This document shows positions 41,671-46,690 of a stretch of 64,000 nucleotides of DNA, piece by piece. Source of the stretch: Eutreptiella sp. 'Long Island Sound 2002' (Eukaryota; Protista; Euglenida). Position 1 is the first letter of the stretch. The number at the start of each line of letters is the position of its first letter. Under the pieces are notes generated by a model. It searched no databases. It was given only the letters and a program-made list of their open reading frames with translations, and had not been told where the DNA came from. The translations under genes and the position numbers were made by a program. The stretch spans positions 187,860,001-187,924,000 of the forward strand of contig OZ038378.1 of the NCBI GenBank assembly GCA_964036045.1, in the 5' to 3' direction.

Positions 41671-42486
41671 GGGCTGAAAAAGCAGAGCATGACACAGAAA
41701 GCAAGGGAAACTCATCTACAGCCATCCAGGCCCTGCACAAAACAACACACACAGCCCAACATAAAAACAATCCAAACCCTTCAAGGGCCCAGACTTCAGA
41801 TTTTGGGGAATCTTCAGATTCATTGTGTAGTGCTTTAACAACTGAAGCGTATTGCAGATGTTATGTGGTGTCATTTTGTGTCTGAGCCTTTTTCTGCTTT
41901 TCTGTGATTTTTGGAGTACCTAAAAGTCCTTTCATTTTTACACAAAAACACATCAAAACTGAAAGCGAGCAATGCAAAGCGAGAGAACATTGTATTCCAG
42001 CCACAAGTCATCATTGTTAGACACTTTGCTGATGTTTCGCATCAATCAAACCAGCTAGGTTGCAGGACCTCTCAATGGTAGCAGCCATTACAGGCCACCA
42101 AAGGTACAGCATGACAGCTTTACTCAACATGCCTTCACAGTCCTTCCACAAAAGCTGCCATATCAGACATTCCCTGATAATATCGCTTCCTAATTATCAG
42201 AGAAGGGCAGGGAGGGGCACCCAGGGGGCACCAACGTAACATTCAGTACAAAGACCGCCTTCTCCGAGTCATTAGGGGGACAGCCACTGTCCCCCTAATG
42301 ACTGGCAGATTCCAATTGAACTCCAGCATTTCAGTGATGTAATTGCCGGCCTGGGGCTTAATCTTGTGGGACTGGGCGCAGCTTCAACAAGGGGGGGCAG
42401 GGGTTGCTTTGGCCTATGCATAGGTCATGTGCCGGGTGTGGGATGCATATGTCCATCTCCACAGAGCCATTCACATCCGCAACGCG

Positions 42487-42850
42487 ATGTTTTCCATCGA
42501 GTCCAGCCCTCAGCATCCATTCACTTTGCCCTCCGAAGGGCCTTTCACTCCCAATTCGTCCGTCAATGAAATGAGCTTTGAGAACAGCTCTGTGGACAAC
42601 GACGACGCCTACCAATGTCGCCCTTGCACCCCAACGCAGCACACCATCAAGAGCTTTGCAAAGCAGAGGCCCGCCGCTACCAGACCGCCAAACCAGAAGG
42701 TCCGCAGCGGCACCAAAAAGCCCGCAGCAAACCCACCCCTTTGCCTGGATTTTCTCAATGGCAAATGCACCCGGTGCGGCTGCAAGTATTATCACCCCAA
42801 GCCCGATGAGATCTTCGAGCACGCAGCAGTAACGACGAAGAAGGGTGCAG
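42487..42850 (+). CDS. CCCH zinc-finger RNA-binding protein, exon 1
   Basis: Acceptor CTCCACAG ends at 42464, ATG at 42487. Contains CLDFLNGKCTRCGCKYYH (C-x7-C-x4-C-x3-H). The phase-1 donor is at 42851 (GTCTGT) or alternatively 42845. Confidence 0.8.
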
Positions 42851-43113
42851 GTCTGTTGGGCTATGTTGTACGGCCGTTGGGTTTTGCTGTGCTGGTTCAT
42901 CGCGCTTCCGCTGGACGTAGGGTGCCAGGGACTGCCGCATCGCCCCCACGTCCTCATGTTGGCTCGTGTGGGGCTGCGCTGTTTGGCTGTGCTGTAGTCA
43001 TGGTGTTGTAGGTGCGGTGTAGGTCTGTCAGTGTGTGTGCTGCAGGGCTTACTGTGTCGTGTATCTGTGTCGTGCTGTGGATGCGTTGGGGTGTGCAAAG
43101 GATGTGTTGCGCT

Positions 43114-43356
43114 CAGGGCTGTCCTTTAGGAATGAGATATGAGGACTGTCTGAGGTCATCGGTGGCAGGATTTGGTTTATCCATGGCGGTTGACACTCAA
43201 CCGACGGAGGGTGGCGCGTAACCCACGGCGGTTGACGGTCAGCTGACGCCGGTTGGCCGATGGTCGAGAGCACTTACTCGTCGGCTGGCGCTACACTGAG
43301 GTCCGAGGGTACCGGGGCGGGTAGGTTTTTCTGCATTGGCGTTAAGGGCAGCCCTG
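43114..43356. mobile_element. MITE-like element (CAGGGCTG family) in intron 1 of the CCCH gene
   Basis: CAGGGCTGTCCTTTAG at 43114 and TTAAGGGCAGCCCTG ending at 43356 form imperfect TIRs. Internal GGCGGTTGAC motifs. Confidence 0.6.
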
Positions 43357-43495
43357 GGCGCTGTTGTGTTCGTCTGTTGGTTTGCACTGCAGGGGCGTCA
43401 GACCACAGTGTCGGTGTGTTTTTGTCTGTCGGCCTGTCTTGGGGTGGGCTGTAGGTCTGTTGGGCTGCGCAGTAGGTCTGTTGGGGCTGCTGCAG

Positions 43496-44055
43496 GTAAG
43501 GGGAGCGGAGGAGCCGCGCCGATGGCCATTATGGCCAACATCTGCGAGGTGTGGCTCCTCACTGGCTTCTGCAAGTTCGGGGACGCCTGCTGGAAGCAGC
43601 ACTTGCCGCGCTGGCAGGCCACCCCTAAGGTCGCTGAGCCGCTCACCAAGAAGTTCCAGGGGTGGATGGAGGGCCGCCCGAGACCTGCAGGCGGCAGAGA
43701 GCCTGCGTTGCCGCTCCCGGTTGAAGTCGGGCTTCCCACGCCACTCCCATTCACTCCGGAGTCCGCGCCGCCGGCTCCCGAAAGCGTTATTTCCCGGAAA
43801 CCGGTCCCGCCGGCTGCAGCCCCCAAAAGGCCCGACCTCAATTCTGCTGCGGCATTCCCCAAGGGCCGCACCCACCATGACAAGCGGGGCCATGCCTTCG
43901 CCGCCCTGGCGCACCTGAAGGCCAGCCACGAACTCTCGCAGACGCGGCTGCTCGAGTCCGCGCAGAAAAGCAGCGGCCCGCCCATCTCAGAGCTGCTGCC
44001 GCTGTCCCATGACAAGGCGCTGACGGAGCAGCACACTGCGCAGGCTTTTGTGCAG
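43496..44055 (+). CDS. CCCH protein, exon 2 (second zinc finger)
   Basis: CAG acceptor at 43493-43495 (phase 1). Contains CEVWLLTGFCKFGDACWKQH (C-x8-C-x5-C-x3-H). Donor CAG|GTTAGC at 44056 (phase 0). Confidence 0.8.
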
Positions 44056-44183
44056 GTTAGCGTGCCCACTGGAGGCTGCTCTGTTTTCGCTCAATATATT
44101 AGGGCTCTCTTCTGCATCTTTTCTTCATCACTTCTTTCTTCCTTCTTTCATCCTCTTCCCACTCCCTCTGTCCCGTTCCTCCT

Positions 44184-44364
44184 CGGGGCTGTCCTTTAGG
44201 AATAGGAATGAGATTCCCCCCCCTTCCCCCTTTTTTCCTCGACGAATGATGAGGTCTTGGACAGCAGGATCGCGGTTCGGCGGCGGCGGTTGTAGCTTGA
44301 GGGGTGGTTGATGGTCAACCAACGCTGCTTGCCCTGCGTGCCCTGCGTGATGGCTGCAGCCCTG
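44184..44364. mobile_element. MITE-like element (CAGGGCTG family) in intron 2 of the CCCH gene
   Basis: GGGGCTGTCCTTTAGGAATAGGAATGAGA at the left end and GCAGCCCTG at the right end. Inverse homology to 25494-25736. Confidence 0.6.
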
Positions 44365-44708
44365 GGGCACGGGCAAAAAGCCTAGAACTGCAGTGCGAAA
44401 CTGCCTTTTTTTACCCCTCTCCCCGCTCTTGAGGGACAAACCCAACAAAAGACATAGCACTGCACATGGGTTGTACTACACATAGCCCTCTAGCCTCAGA
44501 AAACAATGAATTCTGTAGTGCAGGTGCAGGCTGTATTGGTACATATCAAAACTAAAACTCGTTGGGGCGGAACCACCGTTTACGGCAACCAGTAAAACGA
44601 CAGTTCCAAAAAGGCTGATTGGATACCGTGACCTGGCCTTCCTATTGCAGTATTTGACATGTGTTCGTGCATGTGTCGAGGTGAAACCTCTCCCCCTTCC
44701 CGCCCCAG

Positions 44709-44927
44709 TCTGAGACTCGGGGAAGCACAGGCTGCCCTGCTGAACGCCCCCCTCCCCTTCTCCATGCTCAGATGCGCGAGGCAGCATTGCCCCAGACACA
44801 AACCGAAGCCTTTCAAGGCAACACCTACGCGGAGGCCTCGAATCATGTCCAGGCACAGGGCGTTTGGGACTATGGACTGCAGACGGACGCAGCCTCCCCA
44901 TACACGCACAACCCCTACGCATTCTGA
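44709..44927 (+). CDS. CCCH protein, terminal exon ending in YTHNPYAF*
   Basis: A long pyrimidine tract ends CCCCAG| (phase 0), followed by 73 codons that end SPYTHNPYAF-TGA. This frame is not in the ORF track because it has no upstream start. The three exons total 1143 nt (381 codons). Confidence 0.8.
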   Translation, partial: SETRGSTGCPAERPPPLLHAQMREAALPQTQTEAFQGNTYAEASNHVQAQGVWDYGLQTDAASPYTHNPYAF

Positions 44928-45401
44928 TGGATCGCCCAGTCCGGGGAATCCCGCAGCGCCCGCCTCTCTGGAGTGCCCCCCGTGTGCCCTCAAACGCGGG
45001 GTGCAGGCCAGAAGGAGGTGAGGTTGAGATCAACCGCCTGCCAACCCCCCATGGCCGGCCCGGATGGAGGGCTGCACCAGGCACCACCCCCGTAGCGGAC
45101 GTGCCAAGGCCTGCACCTGCACCACGCCCTGCACGGACCTGCTCGCACCCTCAGACCCACGAAGCAGTTTGTCCCACAGGAGCCCATGCTGCAGGGTGGA
45201 TGTGCGCAGGAGCAGGCAGTGTGCGCGTGAAGCCCTGGCCAGTGCACCAGGGGTTTGATGTTTTCAAGGGCGGCAAGGGTTGGCACCCGTGCGGCATGCA
45301 GCTCATGCGACACTTCAACTCCAAACAGGCCACTACCGCACATGTGCCGAAGACCCCAGCTCAACTCTATCTACGTTCCATGTGAGGGAGTGGCCTCTGC
45401 C

Positions 45402-46690
45402 CACACGCCTGCCCAAGCAACTGAGTATTCGAAGCGGAGCATGCGACCTTGGCACCCCCTGCATTTCTGTCCCCTGGGAGAATGCTGCAGTGGCCTGTTC
45501 GCAACCAACCGAAATTCGGCCGCTACCGCCTACTCGGATGATCCCCTCCCTTTCTTTTGCGGCGCTTTCTTACAGGTTGGCTGAGCCAGGATTCCCAGGG
45601 GAAACCCCGCGGAGGGATAGTGTTCTGGATCCCAAGAGCAACCATCCGCACCGGCTGTAGCCGAGTGGCCTGTGAGCCGCAGGCTTTGGCACGCATCAAC
45701 CAACCAGAAAACCGCGTATTAAACATAACAACACGAAGCAGGGCATTGCGGAAGACACGCATGACATGCACGGGCACCAAGCCGTACATGCACGCGCAGC
45801 CCACGCAGGACCTGCGTGCACAGCATCCCCCACCCATTTTCCCATCTTTTCTGCACTACCCCATTATATTATTGAATGTTACCATTTATATTACTGAGGA
45901 AATGATACTGCCTTCAGCTGCAGCACGATTTTCTGTGTCCTACATTGGCCTTACCCCGGCCTCGAATCCGACCACACGGCGTGGCGGCCGCAAGTGCAGA
46001 CATTAACTTGCAAGTATTGAGGGGCAAAGGCAACATTGGGTTGAACACCGAGAAAGCGCCCGAAAAGAATGGCGTTGGCGCCAACACTTAACAAGCACCA
46101 TGACCGCTAACACGTTGGGGGCATTTGGGCATTTGGGGGCCACACACCTGCGCAAGCAATTGAGTATTCGAAGCGGAGCATGCGACCTTGGCATCCCCTG
46201 CATTTCTGTCTCCTGGGAGAATGCTGCAGTGGCCCCTTCGCAACCAACCGAAATTCGGCCGCTACCGCCTACTCGGATGATCCCCCCCCTGTCTTTTGCG
46301 GCGCTTTCTTACAGGTTGGCTGAGCCAGGATTCCCAGGGGAAACCCCGCGGAGGGATAGTGTTCTGGATCCCAAGAGCAACCATCCGCACCGGCTGTAGC
46401 CGAGTGGCCTGTGAGCCGCAGGCTTTGGCACGCATCAACCAACCAGAAAACCGCGTATTAAACATAACAACACGAAGCAGGGCATTGCGGAAGACACGCA
46501 TGACATGCACGGGCACCAAGCCGTACATGCACGCGCAGCCCACGCAGGACCTGCGTGCACAGCATCCCCCACCCATTTTCCCATCTTTTCTGCACTACCC
46601 CATTATATTATTGAATGTTACCATTTATATTACTGAGGAAATGATACTGCCTTCAGCTGCAGCACGATTTTCTGTGTCCTACATTGGCCT
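45402..46690 (+). repeat. Two near-identical 550-bp direct repeats (45402-45951, 46141-46690) around a 189-bp spacer
   Basis: Constant 739-bp offset; the duplicated ORFs 45523..45837 and 46262..46576 are almost identical. The spacer 45954-46125 recurs almost exactly at 54375-54546. Confidence 0.95.

Follow-up and report, generated by a model that had tools for sequence, protein, structure and literature searches.

Do euglenids share with trypanosomes the short motif by which RNA-binding proteins recruit MKT1? The question is raised by a gene at positions 42487-44927 of a stretch of 64,000 nucleotides from Eutreptiella sp. 'Long Island Sound 2002' (GenBank assembly GCA_964036045.1, contig OZ038378.1, positions 187,860,001 to 187,924,000, forward strand). 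This whole stretch is called the window, and all positions are counted from its first letter. The product of the gene carries two CCCH zinc fingers and, close to its C-terminus, the sequence YTHNPY. A preliminary description of the window had placed YTHNPY at 44901-44918 within the protein end SPYTHNPYAF*, which is also how we read it, and had compared it with the motif of Trypanosoma brucei ZC3H11.

In T. brucei the motif was recovered as (Y/W/T)(R/T/Q)H(N/D)PY by MEME on MKT1 two-hybrid partners, and a PY-to-AA change in ZC3H11 abolished MKT1 binding (PMC3985637). The form H(E/D/N/Q)PY is reported to be required for MKT1 binding in T. brucei and to suffice for it (PMC6597758). Gene control in kinetoplastids is almost entirely post-transcriptional, and the HNPY-MKT1 link is one of its central activator mechanisms, described in trypanosomatids only. 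Among the matches listed in a full-text literature search, the papers on HNPY as a protein motif concern trypanosomatids, and a full-text search for MKT1 with Euglena or Euglenozoa gave nothing on true euglenids; what the ZC3H32 paper calls 'Euglenids' are Bodo and monogenetic kinetoplastids.

Relatives of the window protein were collected by searches with the open reading frame (ORF) around exon 2, then with the protein P0003 and then with an alignment (small set); the ORF query let full-length relatives through the length filter. Screening 1.84 billion representatives with a profile produced 1120 matches with E<1e-3, of which 280 had E<1e-10 and 43 had E<1e-30, and the source was looked up for 30 of the 150 listed profile matches. 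All species-named sources among these 30 are euglenids: Entosiphon sulcatum, Ploeotia vitrea, Lentomonas, Keelungia, Dinema validum, Anisonema acinus, Heteronema vittatum, Eutreptiella gymnastica and Euglena gracilis. The GGOE transcripts among the matches we take to be from Euglena longa. A kinetoplastid orthologue was found neither in word searches nor among the species-named sources of the 30 looked-up matches (150 listed). As judged from the matches with a named source, the family so far appears to be confined to euglenids.

Members of the family share three blocks, namely PLCLD[FY]LNG...C[RK]YYHP at finger 1, CEVWxLTGFCKFGxxCWKQH at finger 2 and an AEPLTKKFQ[GE]W box. All three are present in the window protein, which places it in the family, and its exon 2 matches P0002, P0003 and P0004 with E between 1e-12 and 2e-8. 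The exon 2 ORF (P0001) is also found on ctg10947 of the ENA assembly ERZ25074135, which holds in addition the paralogues P0002, P0010/P0011 and P0019+P0049. Of these, P0019 and P0049 are 97% and 99% identical, respectively, to UniRef A0A7S4LCX4 (P0157) from Eutreptiella gymnastica, in agreement with the intron-containing euglenid host named in the preliminary description. The genome of ERZ25074135 is therefore that of E. gymnastica or a very near relative; as a marine alga of the Euglenophyceae it suits the estuarine source of the RNA described below. The recognizable elements of the window protein are the following:

42742-42795, plus strand: finger 1, C-x7-C-x4-C-x3-H, from the translation and Pfam PF22628 zf-CCCH_10 (32.8 bits, cut-off 27).
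43543-43602, plus strand: finger 2, C-x8-C-x5-C-x3-H, from the translation and Pfam PF00642 zf-CCCH (17.6 bits, below the cut-off of 20.5).
43633-43665, plus strand: conserved AEPLTKKFQGW box, from the family alignment.
44901-44918, plus strand: YTHNPY, two residues from the C-terminus, by direct reading and family conservation.

Of the first eleven family members seven have H-[NQS]-P-Y at their end, with 2-5 residues after it. Among the 153 retrieved proteins 36 contain H-x-P-Y, with 38 copies altogether versus 4.7±2.1 in composition-preserving shuffles (8-fold; 500 shuffles, maximum 11 copies). Of the 38 copies 33 (87%) are located within 35 residues of a terminus, where 17.5% are expected (binomial p=2e-20). 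Among these 153 relatives the motif is thus enriched over a shuffled background outside the kinetoplastids. The motif logo is [YFL][VQIT]H[NQST]PY[AS]; the residue after H is N, Q, D or E in 23 of the 38 copies and S, T or C in 13. In the generic multi-finger matches of the profile list the motif is almost never present.

The position of the motif differs between the genera. It occurs at the extreme N-terminus in Entosiphon, Ploeotia, Keelungia and Lentomonas, internally or near the C-terminus in Dinema, Anisonema and Heteronema, and C-terminally in Euglena and Eutreptiella. The C-terminal tails include FVHQPYAL, LIHNPYSF, VVHNPYAA, YVHNPYSW and FAHQPYAP; the N-terminal heads include MQYQHNPYAF (Entosiphon), YQHQPY and YRHEPY (Ploeotia) and FVHSPY (Keelungia). 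Apart from the H-x-P-Y element the tails of the family are unalignable. In the AF2 model of P0157 the motif-bearing tail (residues 431-453) has a pLDDT below 50, so that the conserved element is accessible and disordered. Its place at the ends of the proteins, its disorder, its conservation within tails that otherwise cannot be aligned and its shifts from one terminus to the other mark H-x-P-Y as a selected and functional terminal short linear docking motif across Euglenida and not a product of chance. That the motif has changed terminus speaks for its having been retained or re-created repeatedly.

Tails that end in P-Y are also known from nuclear import signals of the PY type (PY-NLS), which are bound by transportin/Kap104-like karyopherins (Kap-beta2/Kap104) and are likewise terminal and disordered in RNA-binding proteins, with yeast Nab2 and Hrp1 and human FUS as examples. 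The tails of the euglenid family, being terminal, disordered, PY-containing and attached to an RNA-binding protein, could be read in the same way, and the export-like LxxLxxLxL end of a sibling CCCH family suggests that termini in these proteins carry transport signals. The PY-NLS rule, however, requires R/K/H-x(2-5)-P-Y preceded by a basic or hydrophobic patch, whereas the spacing in the euglenid tails is fixed at H-x1-P-Y and the H is not exchanged: of the 58 terminal PY dipeptides 33 have H at position -2, 3 have R and none has K, while among the 83 internal PY dipeptides H occupies this position 5 times. Furthermore, the aromatic residue at -2 of the H and the A or S after the Y are conserved without being required by the rule. 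On spacing and R/K/H interchange the tails thus fall outside the PY-NLS class, and we consider this reading unlikely. Ligands of WW (PPxY) and PTB (NPxY) domains are ruled out, as the P directly precedes the Y and neither PPxY nor NPxY is present.

The sibling group consists of tandem-CCCH proteins without H-x-P-Y, which end in a conserved C-terminal [IF][FL]LD[IM]LxDL... helix with LxxLxxLxL spacing, resembling a nuclear export signal. It comprises P0012 (E. gracilis EG_transcript_15341), P0065, P0068, P0085, P0086, P0090, P0092, P0093, P0096, P0109, P0110, P0117, P0128, P0142, P0145 and P0147. Comparison of the tails suggests that the CCCH proteins of the family and of the sibling group swap terminal effector or transport tags.

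The euglenid motifs fit the trypanosome motif to different degrees. YTHNPY of the window and YQHNPY of Entosiphon match the strict consensus exactly, YRHEPY of Ploeotia fits the broader H(E/D/N/Q)PY, and the commoner FVHQPY fits the core only. The same core is found in the trypanosome MKT1 partners (ZC3H11, CFB1/2, PUF5/9, DRBD6, eIF4G1 and others), and the window motif agrees with theirs at every position; these partners belong to many unrelated protein families, whereas the euglenid comparison covers one. As a model for a C-terminal motif ZC3H11 is the poorer choice, because its motif is central (residues 196-199 of 364; PMC3985637), and it possesses one finger only. The closest known analogues, closer than ZC3H11, are T. 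brucei ZC3H20 and ZC3H21, which combine two CCCH fingers in the N-terminal half with a disordered C-terminal half and an MKT1-recruiting end motif of the HNPY type, WHYNPY in ZC3H20 and WQHNPY in ZC3H21; their activation function needs the PY and is lost on PY-to-AA change (bioRxiv 646547). No homology to these proteins was detected beyond the generic CCCH fold, and the finger spacing differs, with C7C5C3H twice in ZC3H20/21 versus C7C4(6)C3H and C8C5C3H in the euglenid family. Moreover, no MIF4G domain is described in ZC3H20/21.

Both fingers of the window protein were found with the differing spacings given in the preliminary description. Assignment to the CCCH class follows from the ligand pattern together with the curated profile, the latter by way of the score of finger 1. 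Finger 1 of the window shows a 2-aa deletion compared to the family consensus C-x7-C-x6-C-x3-H, and finger 2 is the most conserved block of the family alignment, with invariant columns. The closest solved relatives of the finger pair are the tandem fingers of MBNL1 (E 1.6e-13; profile A3 of 30 sequences against PDB); the likeness to MBNL1/2 and to ZAP-like zf-CCCH_10 is at the level of the fingers only, as linker length and flanks differ. From the fingers we infer that the window protein binds RNA. A Pfam scan gave no match on the last exon. An acidic Ser-rich box is located near the N-terminus of the window protein (42560-42610, aa about 25-40), with the sequence NEMSFENSSVDNDD; its counterpart in paralogues is SDGMSSEGxSSENSD. 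The box is common to the members from Euglenophyceae, including P0002, P0157, P0018, P0006, P0004 and P0158, and may represent a phosphorylation cluster or a second docking site.

Long-form paralogues possess an extra helical domain of about 200 aa. Pfam recognizes MIF4G with 63 bits in P0015 and 34 bits in P0005, and the A3 profile matches the MIF4G domains of eIF4G2/DAP5 (4e-33), EIF4G5 (2e-11) and PAIP1 (2e-6) in PDB, as well as those of eIF4G1 and yeast eIF4G. In the AF2 model of P0157 the domain has a pLDDT of 89-98. The top Foldseek matches of this model are eIF4G HEAT1, Paip1 and SLIP1; as their E-values are weak (8e-3), the assignment as MIF4G is based on the profile-to-PDB match of 4e-33. 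The domain is thus common to the euglenid long forms and the eIF4G-type MIF4G/HEAT1 proteins (eIF4G1/2, DAP5, PAIP1, SLIP1 and trypanosomatid EIF4G5), and no description was found of a MIF4G domain fused directly to tandem CCCH fingers. In trypanosomes MKT1 binds the MIF4G protein EIF4G5 (bioRxiv 2020.03.02.973057) and eIF4G1 carries HNPY (PMC3985637), both of which echo the MIF4G domain of the euglenid long forms. The window protein contains the first approximately 55 aa of the MIF4G-like domain and short remnants at the start of exon 3, the complete domain being absent. Short forms also occur in E. longa (P0006, P0008) and E. gracilis (P0027, P0029, P0032, P0037). The paralogue P0010 (601 aa, ERZ25074135), which lacks the H-x-P-Y tail, carries about seven tandem units of approximately 40 aa (AKKTAKEHADQCGQPNRDS...) between the fingers and MIF4G.

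A truncated protein of this kind might belong to a decaying paralogue in which YTHNPY is a chance match without function. Consistent with such a reading are the loss of most of the MIF4G domain seen in the closest paralogues, the 2-aa deletion in finger 1 and the low RNA depth. Yet the frame is open throughout, no zinc ligand is missing, finger 1 scores above its Pfam cut-off, in-frame splicing is seen in environmental RNA, and tailed short forms without MIF4G also exist in E. gracilis and E. longa. Above all, dozens of relatives throughout Euglenida have the motif at a terminus, within tails that are otherwise unalignable; the family statistics largely refute the chance reading, which we regard as very improbable.

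For the window gene we favor, with about even confidence, a tandem-CCCH euglenid protein whose conserved terminal tag docks MKT1 and activates mRNAs, as suggested by analogy to T. brucei. The fingers would bind chosen mRNAs, and the exposed and disordered YTHNPYAF tag would dock a partner, most likely a euglenid MKT1. Docking would then stabilize the mRNA or promote its translation, as with ZC3H20/21 and ZC3H11 of T. brucei. Selection keeps the motif at an exposed, disordered terminus across the family. Since MKT1 homologues are reported in the literature from fungi, an amoeba, Apicomplexa and trypanosomes, a euglenid MKT1 is to be expected. A text search of the Ebenezer 2019 supplements found no mention of MKT1, PBP1, ataxin or LSM12 (no sequence search was made). 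XAC1, which the preliminary description had listed among the orthologues to be looked for, is absent even from Bodo (bioRxiv 2020.03.02.973057), and its absence in euglenids would therefore refute nothing.

Several observations weigh against docking of MKT1 by a selected tag. The proteins are homologous and form one family, so that the motif counts are not independent events. The motif is missing from two paralogues of the same genome, P0010 and P0011, and the 3 kb downstream of P0011 revealed no hidden last exon that would supply H.PY. Most of the MIF4G domain is lost in the window protein, which could be a decaying paralogue, and the RNA support for its last junction consists of one low-depth metatranscriptome contig. 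Position -1 is mostly V in euglenids versus R, T or Q in trypanosomes, and position +1 includes S, T and C, which are outside the trypanosome set. Finally, according to the literature the trypanosome HNPY proteins do not bind yeast Mkt1p, and the binding pocket is therefore lineage-limited and not universal among MKT1s.

The residue preferences at -1 and +1 would also be explained if the terminal H-x-P-Y docked a partner other than MKT1, the likeness to the trypanosome motif being convergent. Candidates for such a partner are a protein peculiar to euglenids, a factor of translation or decay, and the MIF4G domain of the family itself, acting in cis or in trans. The evidence for the motif concerns its conservation and terminal placement rather than its ligand, and no kinetoplastid member of the family is found among the matches with a species-named source. 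On the other hand, four to six positions agree with the motif on which MKT1 binding in the sister lineage depends and which suffices for it, including the exact fit of YTHNPY and YQHNPY to the strict consensus and the fit of YRHEPY to the broader form, and among described short motifs we are aware of no other with the pattern aromatic-x-H-polar-P-Y. An intramolecular MIF4G ligand is further opposed by the short forms, which keep the motif without MIF4G. We therefore regard a ligand other than MKT1 as possible, though rather doubtful; that MKT1 itself is the ligand of the tails we judge to be evenly balanced, on the analogy drawn above.

Somewhat more tentative is a wider form of the MKT1 proposal, in which recruitment of MKT1 by a terminal aromatic-x-H-polar-P-Y tag would be ancestral to Euglenozoa, not an invention of the kinetoplastids, and the long forms of this lineage-specific family would act as mRNA-specific 'private eIF4Gs'. 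With their sequence-specific CCCH fingers and MIF4G domain they would bring eIF4A and the MKT1-PBP1-PABP complex to chosen transcripts, and the window gene would encode the reduced design, in which the fingers and the tag alone are left. If this is true, the recruitment code dates to the euglenozoan ancestor, before parasitism, before most intron loss and before the loss of transcriptional control. The novelty lies in how widely the motif is distributed among lineages, in its mobility between termini and in the architecture of CCCH fingers, MIF4G and tag, the mechanism itself being known from kinetoplastids. Should the ligand be a different one, the family is still a clean example of a docking motif that changed the protein terminus in evolution. 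It also yields concrete peptides and proteins for a binding comparison with euglenid MKT1.

The gene itself is real, expressed and composed of three exons, with a tandem-CCCH protein of about 359 aa as its product. RNA sequence came from X1, one of three estuary metatranscriptomes (X1-X3) that contain about a fifth of the words searched for; DNA runs of one organism contain all of them, and runs of a second organism are of low coverage. Contigs of X1, X4, X7 and X8 were compared with positions 42000-45600 of the window, a region spanned by a single contig in the DNA run X4. The structure of the gene is as follows:

42487-42850, plus strand: exon 1 with the start codon, an acidic Ser-rich N-terminal stretch, a basic linker and finger 1 (ORF, X1 RNA at 42511-42672, N-termini of paralogues).
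42851-43495, plus strand: intron 1 as proposed in the preliminary description (GT..AG), with stops in the exon frame; covered by DNA, and by RNA only over a repeat.
43496-44055, plus strand: exon 2 with finger 2, the AEPLTKKFQGW box, a Pro-rich linker and about 55 aa of the MIF4G-like domain (X1 RNA, homology to P0002, P0003 and P0157).
44056-44771, plus strand: intron 2 (GT..AG), defined by the X1 RNA contig that joins exon 2 to exon 3.
44772-44927, plus strand: coding part of exon 3, 51 codons and the stop (X1 contigs 44769-44824 and 44850-45033).

The three exons of the preliminary description (42487-42850, 43496-44055 and 44709-44927) are phase-compatible with GT-AG borders, and on translation they give the 380 aa that had been announced. 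X1 RNA contains exon sequence only, save for the repeat in intron 1 and a trace of depth in intron 2, and its contigs cover 42511-42672, 43629-43791, 43926-44052 and 44850-45033 with 0 mismatches. One X1 contig of 183 nt runs from 43926 to 44052 and then from 44769 to 44824, again with 0 mismatches, and skips 716 nt. As CAG fits both sides of the joint between exon 2 and exon 3, the cut can be moved by 3, which gives the canonical junction 44055/44772. Splicing of the last exon in frame to the CCCH exon 2 was thus correctly foreseen; the acceptor is, however, 44772 and not 44709, and positions 44709-44768 are covered by none of the X1 RNA contigs. With the acceptor 63 nt further downstream and the frame kept, the protein is 21 residues shorter than first described and its end SPYTHNPYAF* is unchanged. 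The stop codon (44925-27) directly follows the A and F codons, and the transcript extends in its 3' untranslated region to at least 45033.

Junction 42850/43496 is crossed by no contig among the runs compared. Enumeration gave 113 in-frame GT-AG pairs that could join the two fingers, which makes the proposed junction a reasonable guess. Exons 1 and 2 must join somewhere in this interval, because all paralogues have both fingers in one transcript, and the choice of the junction alters the inter-finger linker only. The start codon ATG at 42487 is supported by homology, as it aligns with the N-terminus of the transcript-derived paralogue P0157. The AG at 42463-64, shortly upstream, is probably the acceptor of the spliced leader.

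A comparable gene is present in ERZ25074135 on ctg10643, where P0019 (L005:4001-5230) and P0049 (L005:5413-5826) are two exons of one gene with the product A0A7S4LCX4. As in the window, gene calling of the prokaryote style separated the last exon, which carries the H-x-P-Y tail, from the rest of the gene.

Intron 1 is specific to the window paralogue, since P0002 and P0019 have no intron between the fingers. It contains a repeat at 43089-43330 (core about 43114-43259) with a DNA word depth of 833-1726 versus 55 elsewhere, at which many contigs break (43114/43185 and 43217/43234/43259). Sub-repeats with a period of 21 nt are located at 43181-43257, and RNA contigs cover the repeat as well. A wholesale transposon insertion as the source of intron 1 is not supported, the high-copy part being confined to about 43114-43259. 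The 18-nt head of the repeat, GGGCTGTCCTTTAGGAAT, has a second copy in intron 2 (44186-44203) and no other in the window. The context of the 5' splice site of intron 1, GCAG followed across the site by GTCTGTTGGGCT (42843-42881), has two repeats just upstream of the proposed 3' splice site (43447-43485), and these direct repeats at the ends of intron 1 might be traces of its origin.

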